This document shows, piece by piece, positions 4,075 through 63,629 of a stretch of 64,000 bases of DNA. The notes below the pieces were generated by a model. It was not told where the DNA came from, made no database searches, and saw nothing but the letters and a program-made list of their open reading frames with translations. Numbering within the stretch: the first letter of the stretch is position 1; every line of letters starts with the position of its first letter. Location of the stretch: the NCBI GenBank assembly GCA_009103225.1, contig RHPI01002119.1, positions 62,001 through 126,000 of the forward strand, in the 5' to 3' direction. The stretch is from Chlorokybus atmophyticus (lineage: Eukaryota > Plantae > Mesostigma and Chlorokybus algae). The translations under genes were made by a program, and so were the position numbers.

Positions 4075-4453
4075 TGCAACGAGGAGGGGTGCTCCCTCCT
4101 CCCTTTAATCCCCTACACCAACACCACCACCAGCCACGACGCCCACGCCGCCGCCGCCAAGGGCAACTGCCGAAGCAGAAGATCCCCTGGCTATGGCAGT
4201 CGCTGCGTTAGTAGCGCCGTCATGCGGCTGGTATCGACATGAGAGACTCATGTCTCATGTCGATATCAGTGTTACAGATAAGTAACACTACATTAAGGCC
4301 TTAACATAAGTTAACGGCCCTAATATGGCTTAATAGGCTGTATAATCCCGTTGGGACCCTTACTTAATCCTAAATAAGGGCGGGGAACCTCTATGGAGGT
4401 AGCACACCGTTATAGTAACCCCGCCTTCACGGGAAAAACACAGCCCTAATACA
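4075..4453 (-). repeat. Putative 5' LTR of the Gypsy element
   Basis: The minus strand begins TGTATTAG and ends GTTGCA just before the PBS. It contains TGTAA and an 8-bp hairpin (4081-4101) next to the PBS. The partner LTR is outside the window, so the outer boundary is unverified. Confidence 0.4.
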
Positions 4454-28184: not shown

Positions 28185-28304
28185 NNNNNNNNNNNNNNNN
28201 NNNNNNNNNNNNNNNNNNNNNNNNNNNNNNNNNNNNNNNNNNNNNNNNNNNNNNNNNNNNNNNNNNNNNNNNNNNNNNNNNNNNNNNNNNNNNNNNNNNN
28301 NNNN
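28185..28304. other. Assembly gap (120 N)
   Basis: Run of N flanked by poly-C. Confidence 1.
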
Positions 28305-33099: not shown

Positions 33100-36000
33100 T
33101 GGGCTGTACACGAGCAACGTCCTCAAGTGCTACATGCTGTCTGTCGTGTAGACGCAAGGAGGGTTGCATGCACTGTAGTTGCAGCTAGAGCCATAATGGC
33201 TGTGGCCTGCGCGCGCTGGAACGTGACATATATGCTTGCGAAAAGCAGTCACAAAGCGTGATAGATGCCGCGTCTCCAACTAATGAGCATCCAACACTAG
33301 GTGCGCACAAGTGGCCAACAAGTCCATTGGGCGACCCATCCAATCGTGCATCTCGATCACCAACGAGATCGGCATGTCTGTCGGGATATGGTCCGGGTAC
33401 TTGGAGCGCTTGTCGCGCTCCGCACTCTGTGCAGCTGATCTCGCTAGGTAGTGGCTGCCGGTGATGGTGGCGTCGAGCAGCATGCGCAAGTCTCGACCCC
33501 GCTCCAAGGCAATGATGTCTATACGACATCCCTGTGCTCACCCTCTCGAACAGGCAATACCCCTGGCTGCTCGCAACGGACGGTGTAGCTCGCCTCCCAC
33601 ATAATGCCAGCAACAGCGTCGCGCACATCGTCGTGTGTCACAATGCAATGGCCGTGGCGCATACAAGATGTCATATGCTCGTCTCGGGCACTGGTGAGCT
33701 GATAACCATATGAACAAAGCTGCATGTGTGCCAGGAGTGGGTGTGGCCAACCAAGCAGGTGACGCATGGCTGTGCGGAACTACGAGTATAAAAAGCGATG
33801 ATCCGAGCGCGCAGAAACCGCCGTCAACCAAGCACTTGCGCCTCCTCTCGATGCCGACTGCAAGCGAGCAGCGTCCGCGATAGAGTTCAATGCCAACTCT
33901 GTCTATAGCTGAGCGCGAGCCGTGGTGTCGATGGCTGTGGTGAGGTCCTGCTGCAGAGGCAGGCTCTGTGACGTCGTAAAAGCACCCTGGTAAAAGGACT
34001 CCGGTGCGAAGTGTGGTGTCAGCTAAGCAGCCACATCACGCAATGCTCGCTGGAAGGGGAGAGTGGTAAAAGGGTTGAAAGCAGTGACGATGGCAACAGT
34101 AAGGTCGGAGTCGTGCGTAGACCCCACTGATGCAAAGCAACGAACGAGCACAGACGCCGCCATCGCCCAACTGCCAACGAATGCTGCAGGCGCCACCTCG
34201 GCCGTGGTGCGCAGGCCAACGCCGCCCACGTCAATGAGGAAAGCTAGCTGCTGACGTACGCGTGAGCTCAGTGCCTCCGAAATGTCCGCAATATGATGTG
34301 GGCAAAACAGTCTAGCAGAGCTCTATCGAAGGCTGACAGCTGCTTGCGAAAAGCTGCTGAAGGGGCCATAGTCCGCATGAGGTAGACTGGAAAGGCAGCA
34401 ATGCAGCGTGTCAGTAGCAAAGTGGCAATTTGCGGATCACGCATGTGCTGCAGTACGCGCAACACCGCCATTGCGTGCTCTAAGCAATAAATGTAGGCAG
34501 CAGCCACAGTAGCCGATCCCAAAGGCACCCGCAGCGCCGTGAAGTTTCTCATGCTCGTGCGTACCTCCACCGGAGAGACATCAGAAACTTCTGAACGGTA
34601 GAAGGCGCACGACTTGTTCCAATGCACCTGCAAGCGCACTGGCTCGCGCGCAGCGCGCATATTCGCAGCTGCCGCCGCTACGTCCTCAGCCGAGCCAATC
34701 AAAATTGTGTCATCCGTGTACATGGGAGACAAATGGTGGCATAGTGGGCAATGACATCACTAACCACACGGGTATGCACAAGCGCGTACAGTAGAACGCG
34801 GCTAAAAGATTACCTTGCCGGGTGCATGTTGGGAAAAGGATGCACTTAATGTAGTTGTCTCCGCTGTACATTAGCAGCGAAAGCGAGCTGTAGAAGCATT
34901 GTAAGAAAGGAATGAGAGGGGCGAAAAGGCCAGCCCGCAACTCCTGAAACATGGCTGCGCAATTGACGGAGTTGAAGGCGTTGGCGATGTCGAGCTGCAG
35001 CACCACATGCTCAGGGTGGGTGTCTAACACCGCGCATATGCCATGCGCCACTATCTCAGCTCCGCCGCGTGTGGCAATTTCATACTGCCATGGCTTAAAG
35101 TGTTTCGCAGCAGTGTTGCGCATCAGCGACAAGAGTGCCCGTGCTGTTCGACGCTGCAAGATGTCCCCGATCACGATCGGGCGCACGCCACTAGGCTTCT
35201 CCAGAGCGATCAATGTGCAGACGGACAAAGCACTCGCCACACGGCCTAGGACACACCCCCCCGCTAGCACGGCGCATATGCGATGCAGGGGCAACAACGC
35301 CAAACTTCGGCGGTGGCCACACTTGAAGTGTGGCCACCGCCGCCATCTGGGTCAAATTGGTGCAGATGATCGTACGACCAACCACTAGGGCCCCCTGCAC
35401 TCCGCCGCGGTGCTGTGGCCAAGGATGTGCGGAATGTGGTCACATCAAACTCAAGCTGCACCGCTGGTGCAAAGTCTGCCACCCACTCAGGTATTGAAGA
35501 AGATGGCACAGGATGCAAACGACGCAGCTCCGATGATGTTGCTGCGGATGGTGGTGCTGGTGCCGCTGGCGTTAAAGCTGCACACGCACACTGCAACTCA
35601 TCAACCTGCCCCAAACGCTCAGCTCGATGCAGAGTGGCCGCCGTCGGGTCATCTCCAACTGCAATGGCTGCCTGTGTACACACTTTGTCGCACACAATTC
35701 CTTGCGCTCATGCAACAACTGCTCCCACTCCCCCAGCAAGAAATGCCACAGCAATCGTATTGCCTGCCGGTGGGCGCCAGCACGACACAAAGGAGACAGC
35801 ACTAGCCTCGGCAACAGCCATAAGACCCACCTAGCAATGTCATCACCATCCACACCAATACGCGAGAAGCACAGAGCAATAGCATGGGCGAAGTCTGCTC
35901 TGTCCGCATAAGGGTTAAAGGACATGAAGTTCAACTCAAGTTGAGACCATCTGGTTCCCGTTTGGTTGGCATGTCTAGGCTCAAGATCCAAGCCCGGGAT

Positions 36001-38021: not shown

Positions 38022-38130
38022 TTATCTCACATGAGCAGGGAGTTGGCAACTTCTTGCTCATGTAAGATAATATACCACAAGTACATGACCATTAAGCTAT
38101 GGCAGCAAAAATAGCTGCCATAGCTTAATG
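38022..38130. repeat. Twin inverted repeats: a 23-bp stem (38022-38070) and a perfect 17-bp stem (38090-38130)
   Basis: ttatctcacatgagcagggagtt-ggc-aacttcttgctcatgtaagataa and cattaagctatggcagc-aaaaata-gctgccatagcttaatg. Confidence 0.95.
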
Positions 38131-42659: not shown

Positions 42660-44165
42660 CCGCGGTCGAGAGGATCTAATACCTTGTGGGTTTTGTGCCA
42701 ATCTTAATATCCAAAAAACACTTGAACAAGTAAGTAGAACCCACTTCAAGTCGTGACCACAATCTGTGACCGAGAATGAATGCCGATGTTGAAAAGTATG
42801 TGAACTTATGTGACTCATGCCAAAGGAAGTAGCCTATAAAATGAGACCAAGTGCTTGGTTACCATCACTCCCTATTCCTAATACTTAGAGAATGTTTCTG
42901 TAGACTTTGTCACCGATTTCCCGAAGTCAAATACACACGAAGACCAACCTGACAAATAGTGGACACATAACTTTCCCTGCATCATGCATTTCTTGAAGCA
43001 ATTAGCAGTACGGAAACGAGGGCAACTTCGCGGGGCAGCCAAATAAGCTTGGTTGTGGTATCATTAAAAACTGGGTTAGTGGTTTATATATCATTATCTA
43101 ATCTTTCACCGCGCCATTTTTCAAGCCCGAACCTTACTTTGACACCCTATCTAGGACCTTAAATGTCCTCAAACTGACTTGTGGTCTTCATGTGTAAAAG
43201 CAATGAAGGGATGGTAGTCTTTGTGGGTAGGTTTAATAAGATGGTTCGTATTGAAGCCATTTCAAAGATTGTCGGTGCAATTGATCTCACTTGAATTTTC
43301 TTTATAAAGGTATGTGGGATGCATGGTTGGCCTTAACAGAAAGTATCCGCAGGGTAATAAGATTTACTAGTGCGTTTTAAGTTGGCAACAACCGAGCAAT
43401 TATATGAAGGCGAATTATGACTTGTCAACGGCCTAACACTTAAAAAACTAACCAATGAGCAAGCAGATAGGATGAACCAAATCAAAAAACATACAATAAG
43501 ACAATATGTAATAGGTACCCAAATTGATTTAGATAGAGATTTATTATTAATAGAATTTGCTATTACCAACTCGGGGCAAGAAAGCACCAACTTCACTTAA
43601 ATTAAAGTCCTATCCCGTGCAAATGGTAACTAGGACTATAGGAAGAGTGAACCCTGAAGCGGCCACCATTACTCAAGAAAGACAAAGGATTATGGCAATG
43701 GCAAAAAGGGCTTTGGCGGAAGCCCCCAATAGGGCAAAATACCACGCCGATAAAAAATGGCGAGAATTACAGTTGCAACCTGCACAAGTGTTGTTAAATG
43801 CAAAGCAAATAAGGTTGCAACAAAAAGGGTCTCTGGAACTCACCCTCCAATGGCAAAGCCCAGTCAAAGTAGTAAAGCATATAGGGACTGTAGCTTATCG
43901 GTCAAATTTGCCACGATCTATGAAGATACATAGTGTATTGAATGTCACGCTTTAGAACAGTACCGCTAGGATGGGAGGGTGCAACCACCGCCCCCGCCGA
44001 AAGTTGATGAGGACTTGAGTGCATACTATGAGCACTGCATAGTATGAGGTAGAGGCGATTTTTGCTAGTCACCAAACTACGAAACAAAAGTCTCCAGACT
44101 ACCTCATACGTTGGAAGGGGTATGGTTCTGAGCACGATATGTGGGTTTTCAAAGGTCAACTTTAA
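42660..44165 (+). pseudogene. Gypsy integrase and chromodomain remnants
   Basis: NLNIQKTLEQVSR...DVEKYVNLCDSCQRK, ENVSVDFVTDFP, QWQSPVKVVKHIGTVAYRSNLPRSMKIHSVLNV, and the chromodomain YEVEAIFASH...YLIRWKGYGSEHDMW. Many stops and frameshifts. Confidence 0.88.
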
Positions 44166-45899: not shown

Positions 45900-48113
45900 C
45901 CATTAGACATCAACGTGGGTTGTTCTCGTACCAGCCTCGCACTTCAGCAGCTGAAGGAAACAACGACATATGTCAATCATGGCAAAAAGTTAAGAAGTGA
46001 TACTACCTTGTAGTACATACTCTTACCACATTCATGCGCACATGTTTACTCGCAAGCACGCTGGCTACCTTCTAACAGGTTATCATCTTGTGCCTTGCTG
46101 CCTAAAATGACAGCACACTGCCACAAGAAGAAGGCGTTGTCAAGATAGCAAGGCCCACTTTGCAAACGACCAAGCTTATTGTACCTGCCAGCTCGTGAAG
46201 CAGGCAACATCCAACGTAATGCATGCAATTGCTTTCACCAAAACCGCTACCGCACCGCTGCCGCTGCCGCTGCCGCCGCCACCGCCATGCCGCCAATTAC
46301 ATATGGCAAGCCGTGACAGGCGAGTCGCGGCGCTTTTTTGAAACTCGCGGGCAATGGTAATGGCAGGGCGGTGGGGGTAAATGGCCGCTATGTCCGGCAC
46401 CGGGGGTGGCGCTGCGCCTTGCGTGAAGGACGCTAAGCTGCGGAGATAAGGCCGAAGATTAGCGGCGTGGTGGTGCACTGCCTCTGACGCAGCGGCAGTG
46501 CACTGCATCAGAGCTGCGCGCCAACAGCAGCAGCGTCCGCCTCGGCTTCAAGATAGCAGCACGAAAGCTCCCCAACAGGTGGAGCAGGAGCCGCTCAAGG
46601 ATGGGTTAACAAGCTTCTGTAACGCGGCCGTCGTCATCGGCGTGATTGCTGTGGTTTGTGGTGGATGCGCTGGTCGCAGTTGCATAGCAGCATCTTCCAT
46701 CACGCTTATAACGTGTCGGATGTGTGCGTGCTGTGTGTCGGTGGAATAAAGTCGATCCCGCGATGGCTAAGAGCGCATCGCTACGGAGTTGCATGAGATC
46801 CAAGTTCGCACGATTTTGAAGTTGCAAATTATGAACAAAGTAATTGATTGAAACTTTATTGTAACCAAGGTTGAAACTCGCCGCACAAGAGCGCGATTGT
46901 CGCAAGCCCTTGATGCGGACCTCGATCGTAAGGTTGATGGCGTAAGGGGAGATTTGCTTTGCAAGGAACTTCTTCCACCGGCGTCACTGTAAGCGATGGT
47001 AGATCCACCTTTTCAAAGAGACATGTCTATTCATTACATAATAATTTGTTGTTTTGTTTGTACATTACGATAGTTAAACCTGTATCGTATTCGTATATTT
47101 GTATCTGTATTATATTGTTGCACGATATCGTGCCATGCGACTTGCTAAAACACAAACGAAGAGACATGTTTAGTTGTTACATAATGATTCATCATTTTGC
47201 TTGTGCGTTACGGTAGTTCAGACCTGTATCGTATCATTATACTTGTACTTCAACTATATTGTTGCGCAAGTTTCATGACAAGTCGCATGACACACAAACA
47301 AAGAAAACAATTGTGTTATGTGAAAGGGTGCTTGTTTGGTTGTGCATGTTCCGCGGTATTATACACCTTCATGAGTACACTTCATGAGTACGCAAATGTA
47401 CGATAACGGAACCAGCAGCAGAGAGATAATTGCGTATGTACAATGGCGGTTGCGTGCTTGTAATCGGCTCATCCCCCCTCCCCCCCCTTCCAAGTCTAAA
47501 ACATATTATTGCAATTGCTGCTAAAAGTCTTGTGTTCAATACAAGTGCGCTAGCTCATGCAATGTTGCTAAGCGCGCGCACTAGATATAGCTATCTGCAT
47601 TGGGTGTAATAACTTTATCCAGCATTAATGCCATTTGTGTCGGCAATGTGAATAAACGTGTGGCGAAGGGTGCGCGCCTTGCGCATGCATGCATGCATGC
47701 ATGCGATGTCTCTGCATCATCTCTCGTACGCACAAGACAATACTTGGAAACAGCTAGCAAATGCTAATCTAACCACCGTTCTACTAAAGCACAAGCTAAC
47801 TTGTATATCTACCCCGTGATGATTGTGAATCCTTGTTGTAGTGTATACCAATGCAGAGGGGTGATGGTCGTGCATGCCATCCTCTGCTGGCAACAATTTG
47901 GCTGTGGCTAGGAGAGTTTCGCAAAGAACGCCTTTATAGCGGTTGACAGCGTGACGGCAATGCCGCAAGGGTAGGTCATCTACGAAGGTAGGTCATCCTG
48001 GTCTTGTCCTACCTGCTTTGCCATAGGCTTTGGCTAGATGTTCACCACTGTTCTTGATGGCCGGCACCTCGTTCTTGAAACCGTAGCGCTTTTAAGCAGA
48101 CACAGTAGAAGCA

Positions 48114-48960
48114 AATAAGTCGCATCCCAGTGTTGACGGCGGCGCGCACAACCCTTTGCAGCTGCCGTCCACGTCGACGATAGCGGATGCGGTTTCTTTG
48201 ATGTGCGCGCATGTGCGTGCGTGCATGCATGCATGCTTGCATGCCTGCCTGCCCACGTGCATGCATGCATGTGTGCGTGAATGTGTACATGTATGCACGC
48301 ACTTCCGAGCAAACACGCACATGCAACGTCGCTCATCCGCATTTGTACTCGTGCATAAGAGCACCTGTGCGCATATGCGCATGAGTGCGTGAATGTCTGG
48401 GCTACTACCACTGAACAATCATGCGACCACAGTGTCACCTTCCGCACAGCTAGCTCCGCTTGCTCGGCAGTGCTGCAGAGCAAAGGAACGCACGCGCGCA
48501 TGCATGCGCACACGAATATGCACATACAGTGTCTGCGCAGCAAGATACAAAAATTAAACATAAGAACATTTACAGGAGCATGCTTTGGTGCTCAACACAG
48601 CTTTCACAAGGGCCGTGCTCAATCACATGGAGAGCGAACAACCTCAAGCAATGTTGACAACACGGACTGAGTGTGTAGGATCATTAGCCCCAATCAGCAC
48701 TACGCACTTTCATTTTCGCTGTTGTTGTTGTCATCGCTGTTGCTGTTGACGCCGCCGCTGCGGGGCTGAAGCCGCGCAATGTGCGCCATGTGGCCTGAGC
48801 AGCAGCGCTTCGGCGCTGCTGCTCAGGCCACATGAAGGATGAGGAGGGAATGAACAACGATGACGACGACAAGGGCAGGGATGCCAGCGTCGCCGCCCTG
48901 CTGCTGAGCAACCCGCACAGCGACCAATGCAGCTCCCGCCGGCAGTCGCTCGTCCACCCA
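48114..48960 (-). pseudogene. Inverted, decayed partial duplicate of the UQCC1 5' region (exon 1, intron 1, start of exon 2)
   Basis: The minus strand aligns with ~61486-62490: gtcgctgtgcgggt(t/c)gctca, gctggcatcc(c/t)tgcc, caggccacatgg, intronic gtgaaagctgt.ttgagca.c.aagcatgc, tgtgcggaaggtg.cac.gtggtcgcatg, gtagcccagacat, tatgcacgagtaca; KKPHPLSS vs EKPRPLSS. Frameshifted. Confidence 0.85.
48787..48834 (+). ncRNA. Candidate small-RNA hairpin: perfect 22-bp stem closed by a c(UUCG)g tetraloop
   Basis: catgtggcctgagcagcagcgc-ttcg-gcgctgctgctcaggccacatg. The structure is certain; transcription and processing are untested. Confidence 0.3.
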
Positions 48961-50454
48961 CATCTGCTCCTCAAGTGGAGCGTTTTGTTTAGAAGTGCAA
49001 TGAAATCAGCCAATAGTGCTGTTGTACAGAGCTCTTCGCGCTGCGATACCAGGGCGCCAAGCGCCGGCAGGGTGGTGATTGTGAGTCGCGGCGGGGGGTT
49101 TGATGGCTGCTTGGGGGGGATAGGTCAGGGCCATGCTGTGCTCGGCGTCAGGGGTGGCGCCACGTTGTACACAGCCCCAATCTTGCGGGATGTTGCTTCA
49201 AGTTCAGCGGCGCGTCGGCGCAGTGCCACCAGTGCGCTGCAGACGGCGTCCGGCCCAGCCCTAGCCCGAGCAGCTGCACAATATCACGCCAGCAAAGGCC
49301 AGCACAAGGAGCTGTCAAGAAGTGAGTTTGAAAATTTAAAGAAAAACGTTGCCCTAATCCTCAACGCTACTATGGTAAGTGGTAGGTTAATTTATTTGCA
49401 TCGGTACATGTTGATGATATTGATACTAGCATGGTTCGTATGCGGTGTTCGCTACGAGCCGCCCTGACAGTAATACACATGTACACACATAACGCTCAGG
49501 CAACAAGAGCGGAACTTTTAGATGATGCTCGTGCAATCAGGATGGAGTTATTGGATGATGCTTGAGCAATGCGAACATACTTGTTACAGGCCATGCATAG
49601 GGTATGAGTCATATTTGCAAGAATGCAAGCAAGCATGCAGTCCGTGTTCACAGCAGCCAACAGTAACTGTGCAATGCATACCTTGCGTCTCGACGTTGAC
49701 ATTCTACAAGGTTTTCTCGGAGGGCAAGAGTTGCCATCCGAGTGCTAATCCGATGTTGTAGGGTTAAGCAAATTAGCATTGGTTATGTGTTATTGATTAT
49801 TGGTAGCATTGTACTAACACGTGGTGATTGCGGCGCTCTTGTAGTGTTGCATGGTAAAGGCGATTTGCCTCGCACACATATGCAAGCACACCAAGCGCAA
49901 GCAAATGCTCGAAGATGCATATGCAAAGACCACAATGGACAGAGAACCAAGAAAGTCTACATGCACCATGTGTCGCCAAGCAGTTCTTGTATAGATTACT
50001 TCAAAGCTTCAACAGTATTGAACAATGTCTCCTGGGGTGACGAATCTACTAAGCTAACCGCACATGCTTGTATCAGGTAAACAAAGCAGCTTTAACACAC
50101 CCTCAACATCATGCAATATCAAACATGAGCTGGCATGATTCTTGCACCTTGTGTCCCGCACCAACATCATTGAATGCCTAACAGTTGCCAAGCCATTTTC
50201 CTGCGGGCATGTCACGCGGCACTAACTGTTTCAACAACTATACATCGCACACCATGGCTAGTTTTAACTGATTGTATGTCACATTGTGTAGTCGCACCGC
50301 ACATGCTGGCGCCATGTTAGCCGCCACAGCGTGACAACCACATGTACTAACAGCTTGCAGCAATTTGCTAAACTGTCCAGCACAAACAACAACCACAACA
50401 TGCTTAGGATACCGTAGCGTACGCTCCCCATATGTCCCCCTGGTATAAACACAA

Positions 50455-52781
50455 CTACTTCCTTGAGATGTCTTTGCCAAAAAGTGATGCAATGGCCTTG
50501 GCAGGGTTGTCCTCGCGCACAAGAGACTCCCCAACCAGCACCTGTGCAAGCTATTCATTAAAACAACGTGCATGCGCAATGACTAGTGCAACAGTCAAAT
50601 GGCGCACTCACCGCACCAACCCCAGCCCTTTGCACAACAGCGATGTCGTCAGGCGTAAACAACCCCGACTCGCCCACAACCTGCACGAGAAAAAAGTAAC
50701 AAGTAACAATTACAGCACCCCAATATCACGCAAACCCCAAAGTGCGCGCATGCATCCACCCTGATCACGCATACCAAAATGTTCTTCTCCCTCACAAGCT
50801 CCCCGCGCTGGCCGGCTAGCAACTCAGCGGTGTTGTAGATGTCAACCTTGAAAGTGCCCAAGTCCCGATTGTTGATGCCCATGAGAGTGACGCCTTCCAG
50901 CACCAGCACCCTGTCTGCCTCTTCCGCAGTGTGAACCTGCACAAACCCACAACAACATGTATGAGTCACCTTCACGAACCAACATCTGTGATCAGCTGCC
51001 ACTACTCGCGCGCTCACCTCCACCAGTGCGGCCATGCCGAGGGCATTGGCCACCTTCAGGAGGTACTTAAGGTCATAGTCACTGAGGACAGCCGCGATGA
51101 GGAGAATGCAATCGGCGCCCTTCACCCTTGCGAGGAAGATCTGGTACGGCTCCACGATGAAGTCTTTGCACAGCAGCGGACACTGCCAAGACAGAACACA
51201 TCTTGCAGTTGGAAATGGAAATGGAATCTTCCGCTTTCGATGCACAACTGTCATTTGCATTGATGCTCACCTGCACACCACTTTCCCTAATCTCCTTCAG
51301 GTACTCAAAGTCGCCCTGCGAGTTGCAACATGCTGAGGATACGTTGTGCAAATGTTGTCCCACTGCTTGTGTGCAATAGTTCAACACGACTGACGTGCTG
51401 CTCACCTGAAAATACTTGCTATCCGTCAACACGCTGATGCACGCGGCGCCACCTTCCTCATATTCTTTGGCTATCTCAACCTGGCAGGCAGTTGCATGCT
51501 TGACATATGTGCTGAACTTCAACTGCACGCGAAGCGCGTACAAACACGAAACAGCATACACCGTACCGGGTTGAAGTCCTCGCGGATAACGCCTCTGCTG
51601 GGTGAGGCCTTCTTGACTTCTGCAATGAGTGCGGGTGCGTCGGTCTCGGTGGCACGCGCCCTGAGTGCAGCCACGAAATCACGCGCGGGTTCAGCGCCTT
51701 TCACCGCTGATACCAGCGTCTGGAATGGCACCTTCTCTTTCCTCTGCAAACACGATGCAAGCGTTGCATCAGCACTTATAAGACAGCGACAACTATGCCA
51801 TGGCTGGCATGCGGTGAAACAGTGGCCATGGCATTGCATGCTTCAACAGCAGGCAATGCTGCATCCATGCGCAATCCTCATTGCATTGTCCCTCATGCTG
51901 AATACGACAGCATGAGTCAACTGCGCTCAGCGTGCCCTAACGAAAGAACGCACTCGTTGGTGTCAGATGCCTCCGATAAACAACCACAGCAACTCAACGT
52001 ATCGACCATCATAGACTGTGTTGTCAAGTCCCAATGCAATACCCATACACGAACACAAAAACACACATGCAAAGGCACACATGCAAAGGCACAAACACAC
52101 GCGAGCCCACACATGCATGCACCCACATGCACCTGTACAAATGCATACGCACACACGCATGCACAAACACACAAAATAAACAAGTGCGGACCTGGCCGAT
52201 CTCAACGTCCTTCCACCAGACGATCTCCTCGAGGATGTTCTGTGGCTTGGCCTCCTCACCGAGCCCATCGACCCGGAAAGAGAAGTTGGGTCCGCAGCTC
52301 AGCACGTTGGCATTTGCTCCGGACGCCCCCACAGGCGGCCGCCGCCTCACCGTCACCTGCGTCTGACCTCCGTGGCTGCTGCTGGACGGCGCCTCAGCCT
52401 GAAAACCCTCAAACAGTCAATCAATCAGTAGACGAGAAGCAGTGAACTCATGCATGTGATGTGAGGAGCAATCAGCATTCTTGCCTCCTCCGGGTCGGTT
52501 AGGGTTTCGCTGTCGATGGCGGTGCAGCGGACGGTGAAGGATGAGGACGAGGAGGCGGGGGAGGATGAGGAGGCCATGGACAATGAGGGTGAGAAGAAGG
52601 AGGAGGAAGACAAGGAAGAGGAGAAAGACGATGTCAAGGCTTTCAAAAGTGGCCTAGCTGCCGACGGCCTTGACGTCAGCCTTGCGGAGGCGAGCGGCCA
52701 GGCCAGAGTCGCCGTCGCCGTCGTCACTGCGATCGGCGACGCCAACACTGTCGCGGTGGTCGTAGCCGATAACAACGCCAT
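50455..52781 (-). CDS. IGPS: Plastid indole-3-glycerol-phosphate synthase (TrpC), multi-exon
   Basis: Ser/Thr-rich transit peptide ending FTVRC, then [80 protein letters not shown] and VLVGESLV. Confidence 0.96.
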
Positions 52782-53133: not shown

Positions 53134-56100
53134 ATGGAGGGTTTGGGAGAGGGAGAAGGAGGGGAGGATGGCGGCGAGGATAACGGAAGCATCGATGAGG
53201 AGGTGGACAGGCAGCTGGCGGCGATCCAGGATGATGAGGACAGTGGGGATGAGGACGAATGGGAGACAGCTGCAGGTAAGTGCTGCGCGGAGAACCGCGA
53301 AGAATCACATCTACATTAACATCCAAATCACTCGTGATTGTCGTGTGTACTCGTGATGGTTGTGTTTGTGGCAAGCTGATACTTGTGTATATGGCAAGTA
53401 TTAGCTTGCCATACACACAAATGTGGGATGGTTGTGTGTATGTCCAATATAAGCTTGCCATACACAGTATATAGGCGAGATATGTTGTGTCGCTCCTTAC
53501 ACCACGTTGTGAGTAATGGCTTGCCATATACACAATAAGGCTAGCCAGCCGTGTTTGCTGCCAGAATGGTACCTCCAGGAAGTCAACAGTCATAACTACG
53601 ATAAAGTTAGTCAGTTGTAACGATGTTACGAACCCCCATGAATGAACAACTGGTGGTATGCTGGAACCACCATGCACAACCCACGCAAACAGGTGTGTGT
53701 TCATGCGCACGCACGCAAACATGCAAACACCCATGAAGCCAAACAAGGCACACACAGGCATCTTCACACTCGCACGCTCGCGCACGCATACACACGCGCA
53801 CGCGCACGCGCGCACATGCGAACAACGCAATGCAACATGACAACGCACGCATCATCACACGCACACATATTCACACACAAAGTGAGTGACGCGTCTCTTT
53901 CCTCAGCGTGTACGCCTGTGTCTCTCAACGCCTCGGAGGACGACCAGGATGAGGAGGAGGAGGACAAGGAGGTGCGCAAGGCCCTTGCTGCCCTCACCGA
54001 GCGCATGGCCGTCACAGACCGCCGACTGCACTCCGCCGCCGCCGTCAACCTCAACACTAACGACACATCACACCAGCACACTGACGATGTAAGCTTCAAC
54101 TTCACACTCACATTGACCAACACAACAATCGAAGCGCTGAGGACCATACGTTGTTCAGACTGCTTCCACGACGACATGGCGAGCCGCCCTGTTGGAAAGC
54201 AGCGCCGTCGTCGCCAACATCGCACCACCGAAAGCCATCGACTCAGCAACTTGTCGCGAGGACGGTGGTGATGCGGACGACGATGATGATGATGATGATG
54301 ATGATGATGTGAGGAGTCCCGGTGCAAAGTCTCTCTGGCACGACCGCACGTCTTGGTTCACCGCTCTTTTGCACAACGATGCTGCTCGTGAGGCCGCGCG
54401 ACTTCATCGCGAGTGCGCCCGCGCGCGCGAGGTCGCCGACAGTGAGATGAAGATCGCAGAAGTGGCCGCGCAGATCGAGGAGGAGAGGGCGAGGGGGACG
54501 GAGGAGAAGTGGAGGGAGGCGAGGGAGAACTATGAGGAGGCGAGGAGGTATGCGTGTGCGTGTGCATGTGGGTGGGTGCGGGGTTGGNNNNNNNNNNNNN
54601 NNNNNNNNNNNNNNNNNNNNNNNNNNNNNNNNNNNNNNNNNNNNNNNNNNNNNNNNNNNNNNNNNNNNNNNNNNNNNNNNNNNNNNNNNNNNNNNNNNNN
54701 NNNNNNNNNNNNNNNNNNNNNNNNNNNNNNNNNNNNNNNNNNNNNNNNNNNNNNNNNNNNNNNNNNNNNNNNNNNNNNNNNNNNNNNNNNNNNNNNNNNN
54801 NNNNNNNNNNNNNNNNNNNNNNNNNNNNNNNNNNNNNNNNNNNNNNNNNNNNNNNNNNNNNNNNNNNNNNNNNNNNNNNNNNNNNNNNNNNNNNNNNNNN
54901 NNNNNNNNNNNNNNNNNNNNNNNNNNNNNNNNNNNNNNNNNNNNNNNNNNNNNNNNNNNNNNNNNNNNNNNNNNNNNNNNNNNNNNNNNNNNNNNNNNNN
55001 NNNNNNNNNNNNNNNGGCCGCGGGGAGGGGGGGTTGTTGAGTGGGTGGGGTGGTTAAGTCTGTTGTATGTTGTTAGGCGGATTGATGAGGCGGCGGAGGC
55101 TGAGCGGGCGTGGCTTGTGGCGAAGGCTGAGGAGGCTCGACGAGAGCAAGAGGAGGCCATGCGCAACAAGCGACTCGCAGAAGTGAGATGTGGCAATGTG
55201 CACTTTGTTTGTACCTGCGTCCTGCATATGACGCTCTTTTATGTCCCAGAAGGCTGACGCAGACCACACGCACACGCACATGACACACCATATAACTTGA
55301 ACTTGTGCGCAGATACGTGTCATGATGGCGGCACGCACAATGCAACGCCTCTTCCGCTCCAAGCTTCTAACACACCAACTCCACCAACAACTCCACGCCC
55401 ACGCCCACGCCCGCGAGCGCGCCATCACCCTCATCCAGTCCCACGCTCGCCGCCTCCTCGCCCGCCACCGCGCGTCCACACTCGTGCAATCCCGCACCCG
55501 CACGCGCAATGAAGCCCTGCACGCGTTGGTCGATGCGTCCAACGACGGCGGCAAGAGGGAGGTGCATGAAGCGGCAAGGGAAGCGCATAGAAGAGGGGTT
55601 GGCGTGGAGGAGATTGCGGAAGCGTGGGCGGCGCTGGAGAGGAGAATACACACGTGCAAGCTCCAGATGATGGTCAGTGAGGATACAACCTCTTGTTGGG
55701 TAGATATGATGATAGATGAGTTGATATGCTCATAAGGTACCCACATTACACCCGCGCGCACGCGTGCACACTCTCACACTCTCCCTGCAGAGGTTGCCCG
55801 GTGATGAGATACGGAGCGAGGTTGTTCACTTGTGCTCCGAGGCCGTCAAGATGGAGATCATCACGCAACAACAGGCGTCCCAACACGTGTCGCTCACAGA
55901 CCAACGGGACGCAGAGGCAACTTCAGCTCTGCTCGCAGCCACCACAACAGGTGTGATGAGTGACACCATGAGTTGTGTGTGGTGTGTGTTTGTCTCATAC
56001 GTGTGCACCATCACAGGTGATCGGGCGCAGTACGATGCGTGCGTGGCGCGTGCGCGCGTGTTGGGGTTGGCCGGCGGGGAGGGGTGGTTGCGCGCGGAGA

Positions 56101-59100
56101 GGGCGTGGAGGGAGCGACGGGAGGCGTGTGCACGCAAGCTGAGGGGTGCAGTTGATAGAGAAGGAGTCGAGCGGGTGTGCAGAGAAGCAAGAGCAATCGG
56201 TCTGAATGAGGTATGTAAAGTGCGTGTGTGTGCGCGTGTGTGTGTATGCGCGAGCGTGTGTATGAGCCTGTTTGTACACGTGAGCATGTGCACGCATGTG
56301 TGCATGTACGTGTGCATGTGTGTGCGCACATGCAAGCCTGTACATTGTCTGTGACTGGTTATACATGACACACGTTCGTCGATAGGGTGTAATTTGGTGT
56401 GTTTGTTGCAGGAGGCTGATGTAGCAGAGAGGTCTTTGCGCGAGCGTGAGGCCGCTATATCCGCACGCAAGGCTGCACTCGAAGCCGCGACATCCACTTT
56501 AATTGCTGCTTCCAAGCACGGGACCCTCGTTGATTTCAACCTCGCATGCGATGAGGCACTCAAACACGGGTTGGATAAGCCACTGCTAGAGTCTGCAAAG
56601 CTTGTTATCGAGGAGCGGAGGGCACGGATATCGCACCTGCTTACTAGAGCAAGCACCAGCGGGGATGCCGCTCGTTTCGGCGATATTGCAGCCAGTGCCG
56701 AGGCGCTTGGCGTGGATATCACTGATGCGAGGGCGATACACATGCGGCTCGCAAGGATAACGGAATTGCGAGGGAAGAAGACTCTTAGCGTGGTGTATCA
56801 GCGGGACAGCCGTGGGTGGCCGTGTAGGTATCTCCAAAGCGCTGGAAATATTGACGCAGTTGTGAGTATCACTGTCCGGGAGGGAGATATCAGTGCAATG
56901 TCGTTTGTATCACAGCCAGCAGAGTATGCGCAAGCGCTGATGCGACAGCTGTCGCAGTGGCAGGCTTCTGCGTCAAATGCAGCGGGCCCGCGCATTGCTG
57001 GGGATACTAGTAGTGAAGCAACTGTTGTTAGCAGTAGGGATAGAATAGCATCTAGCCTGAACTCTGTACATAGCTCCGATATTGGCTCTGGCTTGATATC
57101 CGCAGCACGACAGCTGGGGACAGACACAAAAGGCAGCGGGAAGGTACGTGGGCAAGCATGCAAGCAGACACACATGTTGTCACACAGCCACATCATCAGC
57201 AACAAATTGTACGTCTTCAACAGGCGTTGACACGCGCTATGATTGAGCTCAACTCTCCTGGCATCCCCTCAAACAAGGTGTGGTGCTGCCTGTTGTCCAT
57301 GTAACTGTTGGGTTAACATGTGGCACAACAAACCGACATGTTCTTCGTGTAGGTGGAGAGGCTGGATCTGGGTTTGGAGAACCTCTCATCTCTCGTTGAG
57401 TTGCGCGCGTGCCCGCGTTTGCGTGTGCTTCACGCCAACGTGAACGCGCTTCACACCCTCGCGGGCCTGGCCGAGGCGTGTCCACTTCTCGAAGAATTGG
57501 AGCTCAAAGACAACATCTTTCGCACACTCTCATTACAATGTGCCCTCAAGCACCTGACCAAACTGGTTCTAGACTCGAACCGGATTGAGACTATGGACTT
57601 GTCTGCCTGCGAGAGGCTGACACATCTATCACTGGACGGGAACGACATCACCCGGCTGTCGCCGACATCGCTCCCGCCCTCACTAAAGAGTCTCTCTATC
57701 GCGGCCAATAAGCTCGGACCCGTGCTTGACACCAACAACATCCCTCACTTGCCCAGTCTAGAGCGTGCAAACCTCTCACGCAACGCTTTGGAGAAGGTTG
57801 AAGTCGATATCCTCGTGCATCGGTGGCCTCTGCTGCAGTCTCTCACCCTCTCAGGCAACCGTATATCAGCCTTATCATCGATATCCACGCCAATGCTGAG
57901 AGAACTCTGGTTAAACGGTAACCGACTTTCATCACTACCAAAGGGCCTATTCTTCCTTCCTCGGTTAGAGAGACTGCATCTCCAAGACAACGAGATAACC
58001 GAGTTGCGGGAGCTAACCGGGTTGGTCTCTTTGCGCTCTCTGGACTTGTCTTTTAACCGCGTAGCGGACCTTAACCAGCTTCGCCTCCACCTCGCACCCT
58101 GTTGTCGTTTAGTCTCTGCCAGCTTTACTGATAACCCAGTGACTGGAGTAACCGACTACCGAACCGTGGTTATATCAGCCTGCCCTGCGCTAACTGAGCT
58201 GGATAACGAGCCTGTGAAAAAGGAGTTGAAGACACAACTTGAAGCCAAGGCCCTCGCACGCCAGCTGGCAGCTGCATGTGCACATGTGGATACAATTCTT
58301 GGTGTTGCGAGTGAGGGCGAGTACCCTGCAAGTACTTACAAGCAGTTGTTGTTGAAGACCACATCGAGTAGTGGTGATATGGTCTTCAAGCAGCACAGAG
58401 ACTTTACGCCCGTACTGCATCAGAGCGTATTCGAGCTCAACCCAACATATGTTCAGCGCCAGCTGGCGCAGCGAACACGGGCGGCGTCAACCATACAAGA
58501 GTGTTGGCGTCAAGTACGCACACGTACAAGGGGAGGAGGAGCCCAACTCTGCCCCACACCCACAATTGCACCAGTATCTTCTCCACCACCACCACCACCA
58601 CCACAACAACACCATCACGAACAACAACAACAACAACAACAACATAAACATGATGCTGCTACTTTGATACAATCACGTTGGCGTGGGCATACAGCTAGGC
58701 GGGCTTACACCCACACCTTCCTCATCCAACACAAGGCTGCTGTGAAGGTGCAGGCGGTGTTCAGAGGCGTGCGCATGCGCAGACGCATGGTGGCAGCGAT
58801 GGCGGCCGCCCGATACACAGATGACGATGACTTTGACTATGACACTATGGAGGACGAGCGTGTCGTCATCAGCACTCTGCCTGCTCCCGCCGCCGCTCCT
58901 GCTGCTATTGTTGTTCATACACCCAACCTGCCTGTTGTTAGTGCAAAGATAACGAGTATGAGGCCAGAGATCAGTTTTAATCAGATCGAAGTTAGAGCTC
59001 CCCCTCAAGCTTCAAAGAAGGATGGTCAAAGAGAGTTGGAGAAGCCTGCTGAGAAGCCACTGACTGTGCAGGTGTGCTTAGTTGGGCTTGTTTGCAAGAA

Positions 59101-60157
59101 CTTGGTCACAGAAGTCAGTCAGAGTGTTGTGTTTGACACGCACGCACACACCCACGCGCACACAGACCGTGCTCATGTTTCTGTGCTGTTCCAGGTTGAT
59201 ACTGAGGGATCCGTGTCAAGTGCAAGAAGCGTGCGTGTGTTGGAGAAGAAACAGCGTGAGGTGACTGAAGTCGCCAATGAGTGGTAAGTTGTGTGACAAC
59301 GCTGTTGAGTTGAAGACCAATGTAAGATATGTTGTAATGTGGCAATGTTTCATCATACAGGGGTTTCAAGGACCCGCGCACAGCAGAGCTGTTGCTTCGC
59401 GCCAAGCAACGCTTGACCGCCGGCAAGCAGCGTCTCAAAGGAGGAGGCAAAGAGGTTCATCACTCTCAACGCCGGCGCAGTGAGGACTCGATGCGCCGGC
59501 TGAAAGCTGGGGACGTTGACGGCGTCTCAACATCAACAACAACACCGTCTTCAACGAGGCCACCTCGAGCACCACTCCCACTCGCACCGCACTCGCCAGC
59601 ACTATCCGCTGCCTCCATGCCAGCAGGTGTGTGAGTGTAGCTGTGGGTGTGCGAGTGCGTGTGTGTGTGTGCACGCAGCTGGCGTGACAGGCATTGCCTT
59701 TGCAGATGGAGAGGGTGAGGATGCGCGCAGCCAATGGGGTGCGGGTTCAGACGCCGGAAGCACATGCTACAGCGATCGTGGAGGTGTACGCGACTTTACT
59801 TCCAAAGCAGCCAACAACATAAAGGTATTTCCCCCCCTCCCCCCCTCCCCCCCCCCAAACACCNNNNNNNNNNNNNNNNNNNNNNNNNNNNNNNNNNNNN
59901 NNNNNNNNNNNNNNNNNNNNNNNNNNNNNNNNNNNNNNNNNNNNNNNNNNNNNNNNNNNNNNNNNNNNNNNNNNNNNNNNNNNNNNNNNNNNNNNNNNNN
60001 NNNNNNNNNNNNNNNNNNNNNNNNNNNNNNNNNNNNNNNNNNNNNNNNNNNNNNNNNNNNNNNNNNNNNNNNNNNNNNNNNNNNNNNNNNNNNNNNNNNN
60101 NNNNNNNNNNNNNNNNNNNNNNNNNNNNNNNNNNNNNNNNNNNNNNNNNNNNNNNNN

Positions 60158-61494: not shown

Positions 61495-63629
61495 ATGCTG
61501 CTGAGGGCGGGCGCTGCGCGTGTCGCTGTGCGGGTCGCTCAACAGGGCAGGACGGTGGCGCTGGCATCCTTGCCTGTGTCGTCATCGTCGTCGTCCACGG
61601 ACTGCTCCTCATCCTTTGGCTGCGATGCCCATGGCCAGGCCACATGGAGCACATGGCGCTGCTACGCCACCGCGGCGACGGCGGCGGCATCAACAGCAAC
61701 AGCAACAGCGACAACGACCACGACAGCGGTGTTGAATGTATGTATGCTGCCAGGGTTCACCGCTTCTGAAACACAGTTTTCGTGACAACCGCTGCTTAGG
61801 GTAGTTTCCAACGACCTCACAAGCTCGTTGAACTTGAACACCCGTGGTGAAAGCTGTTTTGAGCAGCCAAGCATGCATGCTGCTGCTTTATACTTTTTCG
61901 TCTGTATGCATGCGTGCAAGCATCTCCCAGGCCTAGCCGCTTTTCCGCAGCAGTGTGCGGAAGGTGCCACGGTGGTCGCATGCACTTTCAGTAGCCCAGA
62001 CATGCACACTTTATTGTGTGAAAAGCCTGCACGCATGCGCGCACATCTGCTCGTATGCACGAGTACACAAGCATGCACGTACGAATTGGCATGCGCATGT
62101 AGACACGCACACGCATGCGCACAAAAACGCGCGCAAGCTCATGCAGACACGCACACGAGCACGCATGCTCATAATCAAGTACATGCACAGGCACGTATGC
62201 TCACATGCATGCATGCATGTGTAGTGTGCGTGCTCATGCGCAGATGCACGCGCGCACGAGCACGCACACTTGCTCACACTCGCACGCAAAAGCGCATCGC
62301 TATGCGCCCTCACATCCCCACACTCACCCCTTCCCACACATCCACACGCAGCCTTCAGAGCTCTTCCGCGAGAAGCCACGTCCACTTTCTTCCGTCACTA
62401 CCACCGGCGCCGACCCCGCGGGCGAGGCGAAGGGTTGGCGTCGCGCGCTGCTGACGGCGTTGGGAGTCTACTCCCTCGAGTCGCGACTCATCCGAGGAAC
62501 CGAAAGACTCTACGCAGCTGTCGTTACACAGGCAGAGAACAATGCACTCTACCAAGGCATGGACTCTGCATGCGTGCGCGCGCGCGCGCGCGTGCGTGCG
62601 TGCGCGTGCGTGCGTGTGTGCAAGCGTGTGCGTGTTAGTGTTGTACATGTGTTATTCAATTGTGGCTTTGTGTGCGTGCAGCATTGGATCTGGACAAGGA
62701 TTTTCGTGCCGTGCATGCGATGCTGTCGTTGCACCTGTGGCTGCTTCACGAGCGGTTGCGTCGTGAGGCTGCAGACTCAGACAACCACGCTGGCGCCTCC
62801 AAGCTGAGACAGATATTGCACGATCGATTCTGCACGGACGTCGAGCTTCGCGTCCACGCCGCCGGGGTGAGGGAGGAAGAGGAGTGAAGTACTTGTTGTT
62901 GTTGTTGTTGTTGTGTCGGATGAGGTTGGTTAATGTTGTGTACCTTTTGTCAAGTAGGTGAGGGTGAGGGTCGGGAAGTGGCTGAATGAGCTGGAGCAGA
63001 GGTTTTATGGCTACACGTACGCGTTCACGCAAGGGCTCAACGGCAAGGAAGATCTCGGCCTCGCCTTGTGGAGGTAAGGATGTCGTTGATGTTGCTGTCG
63101 TGGTCGTTGTTGATGATGATGATCACGCAGCTATGTTGAAACATATACAAACATCTCACCGCGCGCAGGAATGTGCTGAGGTCAGATGAGTCTCTGCCGG
63201 CAGACACCATTCCTGAAGATCGCAAGGCATATGTACAGGTGAGTATCATGGATTGAGGCATACCTGTGTCAATTGCCGCAGTCTATGCGCCACACTTGCA
63301 AGCTGGACCCACGCATGAGTTGAGAGTTGGGGTGTGCCGGTTATCCTTTCTAGTGTCGCAACGTTGTTGACATCAGTTGTCACTGTATCTGTAATAACGT
63401 GTGCCATGCAGGCTTTGGTGCGATATGTCAAGCGCGAAGCTGCATCTCTTGCCATGACTGGTAAGCACACGTTTCATTGTGGGTGTCTGCATGCATGCGG
63501 TATCAATTGCACCATACAGATGTGCGAAGCATGCTGTATGCTGAGCTCTGATGCAGATGTGCAAACGTTTTTTGTGCAGACATAAAGGATGTTTTGGCCG
63601 GCAACGTCAGGTTTGATGCGTACAAGTAG
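61495..63629 (+). CDS. UQCC1: Ubiquinol-cytochrome c reductase chaperone (UQCC1/CBP3) with a mitochondrial presequence, 7 exons
   Basis: Arg/Ala/Ser-rich presequence; LGVYSLESRLIRGTERLY; DFRAVHAMLSLHLWLLHERLR; DRFCTDVELRV; WLNELEQRFYG...LALWRN; LVRYVKRE; GNVRF. Confidence 0.88.

Follow-up and report, generated by a model that had tools for sequence, protein, structure and literature searches.

A perfect 22-bp hairpin lying within a decayed, inverted fragment of a UQCC1-like gene of Chlorokybus is best read as a scar left when DNA synthesis briefly switched template within one strand (snap-back), in a non-functional, neutrally decaying piece of DNA; we put the probability of this reading at roughly 0.78. 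The hairpin lies in a 64-kb stretch of DNA, referred to below as the window. Coordinates of the features that bear on its origin, and of those that surround it, are collected in Table 1.

The earlier note on this DNA had described a perfect 22-bp stem at 48787-48834, capped on the + strand by a UUCG loop, and both parts of that description proved exact. All 22 pairs are Watson-Crick, the arms being adjacent reverse complements on either side of a 4-nt spacer whose sequence is TTCG on + and CGAA on -. The resulting 48-nt palindrome is the longest perfect short-loop hairpin within the window. When folded as RNA, it reached -57 kcal/mol on the + strand (z -6.95) and -56.6 kcal/mol on the minus strand (z -9.19), and in neither case did any of 200 shuffles reach such an energy; as DNA, it reached about -32 kcal/mol with a z value of about -11, and no shuffle equalled it. 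The 12-mer GCGC-TTCG-GCGC at its centre folds as DNA with -4.1 kcal/mol. A special role for the UUCG loop was considered and rejected: the motif is present on one strand only, and, by our estimate, about one in six random tetraloops would count as "special" on one strand or the other. Since the loop can be accounted for as the spacer within the site at which the switch may have nucleated (see below), no further meaning was attached to it.

Table 1. Window coordinates of the hairpin, the gene fragment that holds it, the parent gene and other features
Feature	Position	Strand	Remarks
Left arm of hairpin	48787-48808		Outer 11-12 nt continuous with left flank, antisense-homologous to parent exon 1
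Loop of hairpin	48809-48812		4 nt: TTCG on +, CGAA on -
Right arm of hairpin	48813-48834		48817-48834 (18 nt), putative templated insertion copied from left arm
Mini-hairpin GCGC-TTCG-GCGC	48805-48816		Centred on the 4-nt loop; putative nucleating site
Decayed inverted partial UQCC1-like copy	48344-48945	-	Exon 1 and ~330 bp of intron 1
Parent exon 1 (putative)	61495-61737	+	81 codons, low-complexity N-terminal extension
Parent counterpart of hairpin core	61617-61635	+	19 nt
Parent exon with Ubiq_cyt_C_chap domain	62660-62884	+	PF03981, E 2.3e-08, 34.7 bits, cut-off 21.5
ORF, 211 aa	48832-49467	+	Starts in right arm
ORF, 109 aa	48684-49013	-	Runs through hairpin
IGPS (indole-3-glycerol-phosphate synthase), multi-exon	50400-52420	-	PF00218 on two exon pieces
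LRR/IQ protein	57353-59284		
Reverse transcriptase remnant (RVT_1)	34710-35300	-	
Tf2-1-type integrase SH3 domain	43557-43952	+	
Perfect hairpin	38090-38130		17-bp stem, 7-nt loop
Perfect hairpin	35308-35342		17-bp stem, 1-nt loop; abuts reverse transcriptase remnant
Perfect hairpin	4232-4265		13-bp stem, 8-nt loop

The fragment that holds the hairpin is ~600 bp long and shows inverted homology to 61.5-62.1 kb of the window. The gene found there, referred to as the parent, is UQCC1/Cbp3-like, since one of its exons matches PF03981 above the cut-off. Boundaries of the parent exons were deduced from the open reading frame and the donor site (GTATGT at 61738, directly after exon 1), and the exons were searched singly, never joined into one spliced protein. 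Identity between the fragment and the parent is about 73-79% (79% in one part of the exon and 73% in the other, with 73% in the intron). The start codon of the fragment has been lost through a 12-nt deletion, a 2-nt deletion shifts the frame by -2, a search for further exons of a second UQCC1 copy found none, and the copy contains no PF03981 domain. Given the deleted start codon, the frameshift, the equal divergence of exon and intron, and the lack of later exons, the fragment is, judging by its sequence, dead as a UQCC1 exon, and the decay that had been claimed for the DNA around the hairpin thus stands. In being partial, in the loss of its start codon, in its frameshift and missing later exons, and in the equal decay of exon and intron, it resembles processed or partial pseudogene fragments. 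Unlike processed pseudogenes, it includes intron sequence, and it adjoins a stretch rich in retroelement remnants. Because intron sequence is included, the fragment is a segmental, DNA-level copy and not a retrocopy. A search for terminal inverted or tandem repeats, as expected of transposon cargo, found none.

The gene content of the window, which includes exons of IGPS and an LRR/IQ protein, fits a green alga. The IGPS gene is on the same strand as the fragment, and its 3' end is ~1.5 kb upstream. Left of the hairpin, at 38-48 kb, there is an AT-richer (lower-GC) stretch that adjoins the fragment and carries retroelement remnants. Two tandem units of ~143 bp, 78-80% identical, are located within the AT-rich spacer at 47016-47265, and microsatellites of the (GCAT)n, (GTGC)n and GC-dinucleotide types are found at 47674-47713, 48203-48301, 62190-62229 and 62566-62642. 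Runs of N, which are scaffold gaps, occupy positions 28185-28304, 54588-55015 and 59864-60157. Two long open reading frames, of 211 and 109 aa, overlap the fragment on opposite strands. Neither has a Pfam domain, nor relatives detectable by a word-index protein search; they were not accepted as genes and are probably chance open reading frames in GC-rich, repeat-biased sequence.

The comparison with the parent is most informative at the hairpin itself. Positions 48786-48797 (+ strand, 12 nt) are the exact reverse complement of parent positions 61636-61647, and a second conserved block, 48835-48846, is the reverse complement of parent positions 61605-61616. The two blocks are separated by 19 nt in the parent and by 37 nt in the copy. 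The 18-nt surplus of the copy coincides exactly with 48817-48834, i.e., with the right arm minus its innermost GCGC. This length arithmetic, like the palindrome itself and the dead state of the copy, is read directly from the letters. The homologous flank resumes at the expected position right after the palindrome, and the point of return shows no microhomology. Of the 37 nt in the copy, the 19 presumed to be ancestral (48798-48816) agree with the 19 nt of the parent at 8 of 19 positions in an ungapped comparison, which is below the agreement of the flanks. This poorer match suggests that either the segment has also changed in other ways, for instance by CAG/CTG slippage, or a single switch is too simple a description of the event.

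Several claims of the earlier note can be judged from the same comparison. It had pointed to a 12-nt arm end held in common with the parent at 61636-61647, and the exact antisense match is indeed present. However, as the fragment is itself an inverted copy, the match is, on the alignment, shared by descent; it is trivial for such a copy, and not an independent signal. The absence of a hairpin from the parent was likewise borne out: the corresponding site is unstructured, with no significant hairpin (fold z values of +0.6 and +0.8, and -0.5 for the wider region). The note's further claim, that the stem arose after duplication, agrees with our results in two respects, the parent having no hairpin and the arms appearing younger than the copy. 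The flanks differ from the parent at ~24% of positions, which corresponds to ~0.29 substitutions per site after correction. Were the arms as old as the duplication, five to six of the 22 pairs would be expected to be broken, and, by our calculation, the probability of finding none broken is ~0.002-0.005. With no broken pairs, the palindrome would clearly be younger than the copy, unless selection or self-correction keeps the arms perfect. The comparison thus supports gain of the hairpin in the lineage of the copy after duplication.

The following series of events would account for these observations. The fragment would already have held the self-complementary sequence GCGC-TTCG-GCGC, immediately inside the block that descends from the parent. 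The nascent + strand, ending in the second GCGC, would have folded onto the first GCGC, extended itself by 18 nt templated from its own upstream sequence, and then gone back to the original template. In a single event, a 4-bp mini-hairpin would thereby have become a perfect 22-bp palindrome, whose perfection would be due to youth and not to maintenance, with no function needed. One snap-back switch can explain the whole palindrome because the 18-nt surplus is the part of one arm that lies outside the mini-hairpin. These inserted 18 nt are not a foreign element, since they form a perfect reverse complement to the sequence right beside them. The order of the steps and the strand on which the switch took place are what we infer; neutrality of the hairpin is assumed. 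A recent template switch without function had been offered in the earlier note as the alternative to its small-RNA reading, and it is this alternative that fits best, the additional 18 nt being the templated part of one arm.

Template switching is known to make whole perfect hairpins in one event (PMC10710096). The case described here resembles short template-switch mutations and quasi-palindrome correction (the four-point model of Loytynoja and Goldman, Ripley-type snap-back; PMC10710096) in that a perfect inverted copy of adjacent sequence is present in one lineage, the change in length equals the copied stretch, nucleation would have occurred at a short pre-existing inverted repeat, and the full hairpin would have been made in one step. 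It differs from known cases in that the ancestral state comes from an intragenomic paralogue that is ~25% diverged, and not from orthologues or polymorphism, in that the inner 19 nt match the parent poorly, and in that the host is an early-diverging streptophyte alga. Short of a dedicated literature search, we know of no report of such template-switch events in early-diverging streptophyte algae.

The exact resumption of the homologous flank also bears on the possibility that the palindrome is an assembly or library artefact, absent from the DNA of the organism. The window belongs to a draft assembly whose scaffold is interrupted here by three N gaps, and the loop together with an arm and a junction had 0 matches in a metagenome scan, both of which leave some room for such an artefact. 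Yet a return to the homologous flank exactly after 22 bp requires two switches, which library fold-back and long-read artefacts do not give, and a palindrome of 48 nt is shorter than one read. Moreover, the published Chlorokybus assembly, from which we infer that the window derives, was made from Illumina/BGISEQ short reads at ~775x, with no long reads or whole-genome amplification (PMC7027972). We therefore regard an artefact as unlikely.

The snap-back reading gains from what is seen elsewhere in the window. Perfect hairpins of at least 13 bp with a loop of at most 12 nt occur four times (22, 17, 17 and 13 bp), and their sequences are unrelated. None of 40 first-order Markov simulations of the window produced a hairpin of at least 13 bp. 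No sequence shared with the 22-bp palindrome was found elsewhere in the window, and the other three palindromes have no paralogues within the window by which they could be polarised. This excess of perfect palindromes, again a direct reading, points to a mutational process and not to selection, since the palindromes are unrelated in sequence.

The same observations weigh against the view that the palindrome is old, with 18 nt lost from the parent, or that selection or repeated self-correction has kept it perfect because it acts as an element in DNA or RNA, such as a dyad bound by protein, a signal for a 3' end or for termination beyond IGPS, or a block to translation. Two sequences alone cannot fix the polarity of an indel, palindromes are prone to deletion, and, on the minus strand, the switch also made an in-frame ATG located 43 codons upstream of a retained GT donor. 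But perfect arms amid flanks that are ~25% diverged argue for youth, the copy has lost its original start codon and is frameshifted, and no coding partner is found downstream on the minus strand. In addition, nothing else in the window has the sequence of the palindrome, and the other perfect palindromes are unrelated to it in context as well as in sequence. An old or selected palindrome is, in our judgement, quite unlikely.

We consider it very unlikely that the hairpin is a nascent hairpin-RNA or miRNA-like locus, in which a transcript would fold, an algal-type Dicer would cut the 22-bp stem, and the 5' arm of the + strand would guide Argonaute to UQCC1 exon 1 by seed-type pairing. The RNA stem is very stable, perfect and, at 22 bp, of Dicer size, and the 5' arm of the + strand begins with 11-12 nt that pair without a mismatch to parent positions 61636-61647. 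Chlorokybus encodes algal-type DCL and AGO (PMC7994812); according to the same paper, knowledge of small RNAs in streptophyte algae is almost non-existent. For Chlamydomonas, PMC4817775 cites work according to which seed pairing alone can be enough to repress a target, and states that DCL3 cuts hairpins in UTRs, introns and exons. In primates, some template-switch hairpins turned into miRNA genes (PMC10710096).

Against this reading, no gene model or homologue that would point to transcription was found on either strand at the site, and the nearest gene, IGPS, ends ~1.5 kb away. Over its full length, the arm agrees with the parent at 15 of its 22 nt (seven mismatches), which is no closer than to random sites, five others in the window being matched equally well; the contiguous 5' 11-12 nt are inherited, not gained. 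Perfect palindromes are, as described above, generally in excess within the window. The base rate at which such hairpins become miRNA loci is ~1%: in primate genes, 0.9% of suitable template-switch hairpins are annotated miRNAs (PMC10710096).

The form of the foldback argues in the same direction. It is only 48 nt long, its loop is 4 nt and no lower stem adjoins it, and a precursor of usual size, with the duplex inside a longer stem, was not found; the only further pairing is between distant repeats on the + strand. There, remnants of coding repeats, GTT-rich at 48714-48740 and GAC/AAC-rich at 48852-48880, can pair as RNA. These repeats, 50-70 nt on each side of the hairpin, can extend the fold in favor of the small-RNA reading, embedding the perfect stem in a branched structure of ~165 nt with a z value of -6.5; such a fold is not seen in the parent region (z -0.5). 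No Rfam family was matched at threshold. At permissive E-values, only sub-threshold look-alikes of animal miRNAs were obtained, mostly on the (GCAT)n repeat, the best at 26.2 bits against a gathering score of 76; those on microsatellites were rejected as spurious.

According to the inverted-duplication model for the origin of plant MIR genes, reportedly put forward by Allen et al. in 2004, the founder gene supplies both foldback arms, which retain extended complementarity to it. The Chlorokybus hairpin is similar in that a duplicated piece of a coding gene carries a foldback partly complementary to its founder. In contrast to the model, only the outer 12 of the 22 nt of each arm are gene-derived, and the second arm derives from the first by local copying. 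Known plant or Chlamydomonas precursors are also far longer than this foldback. If the fragment were transcribed, the hairpin might be a proto-miRNA caught at birth, its 5' arm holding an inherited 11-12-nt seed match to the mRNA of the parent, which, on the sequence evidence, we consider highly improbable. Such a proto-miRNA, if real, would unite two proposed routes, duplication of a gene fragment and template switching, and would do so in one of the earliest-diverging streptophyte algae. The hairpin would bear on the origin of new regulatory RNAs only if small RNAs came from the site.

The 22-bp hairpin is thus probably an ordinary mutational scar, left by a recent template-switch insertion and functionless, and it is one more instance of a mutation type already described. 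It is of modest interest unless small RNAs or conservation are shown. Its value is that of a clean, polarised example, with the parent gene, also present in the window, as the outgroup, of how one 18-nt templated insertion at a 4-bp mini-hairpin can yield a perfect 22-bp hairpin. Taken with the other palindromes of the window, it suggests that Chlorokybus shows the results of template switching unusually clearly.
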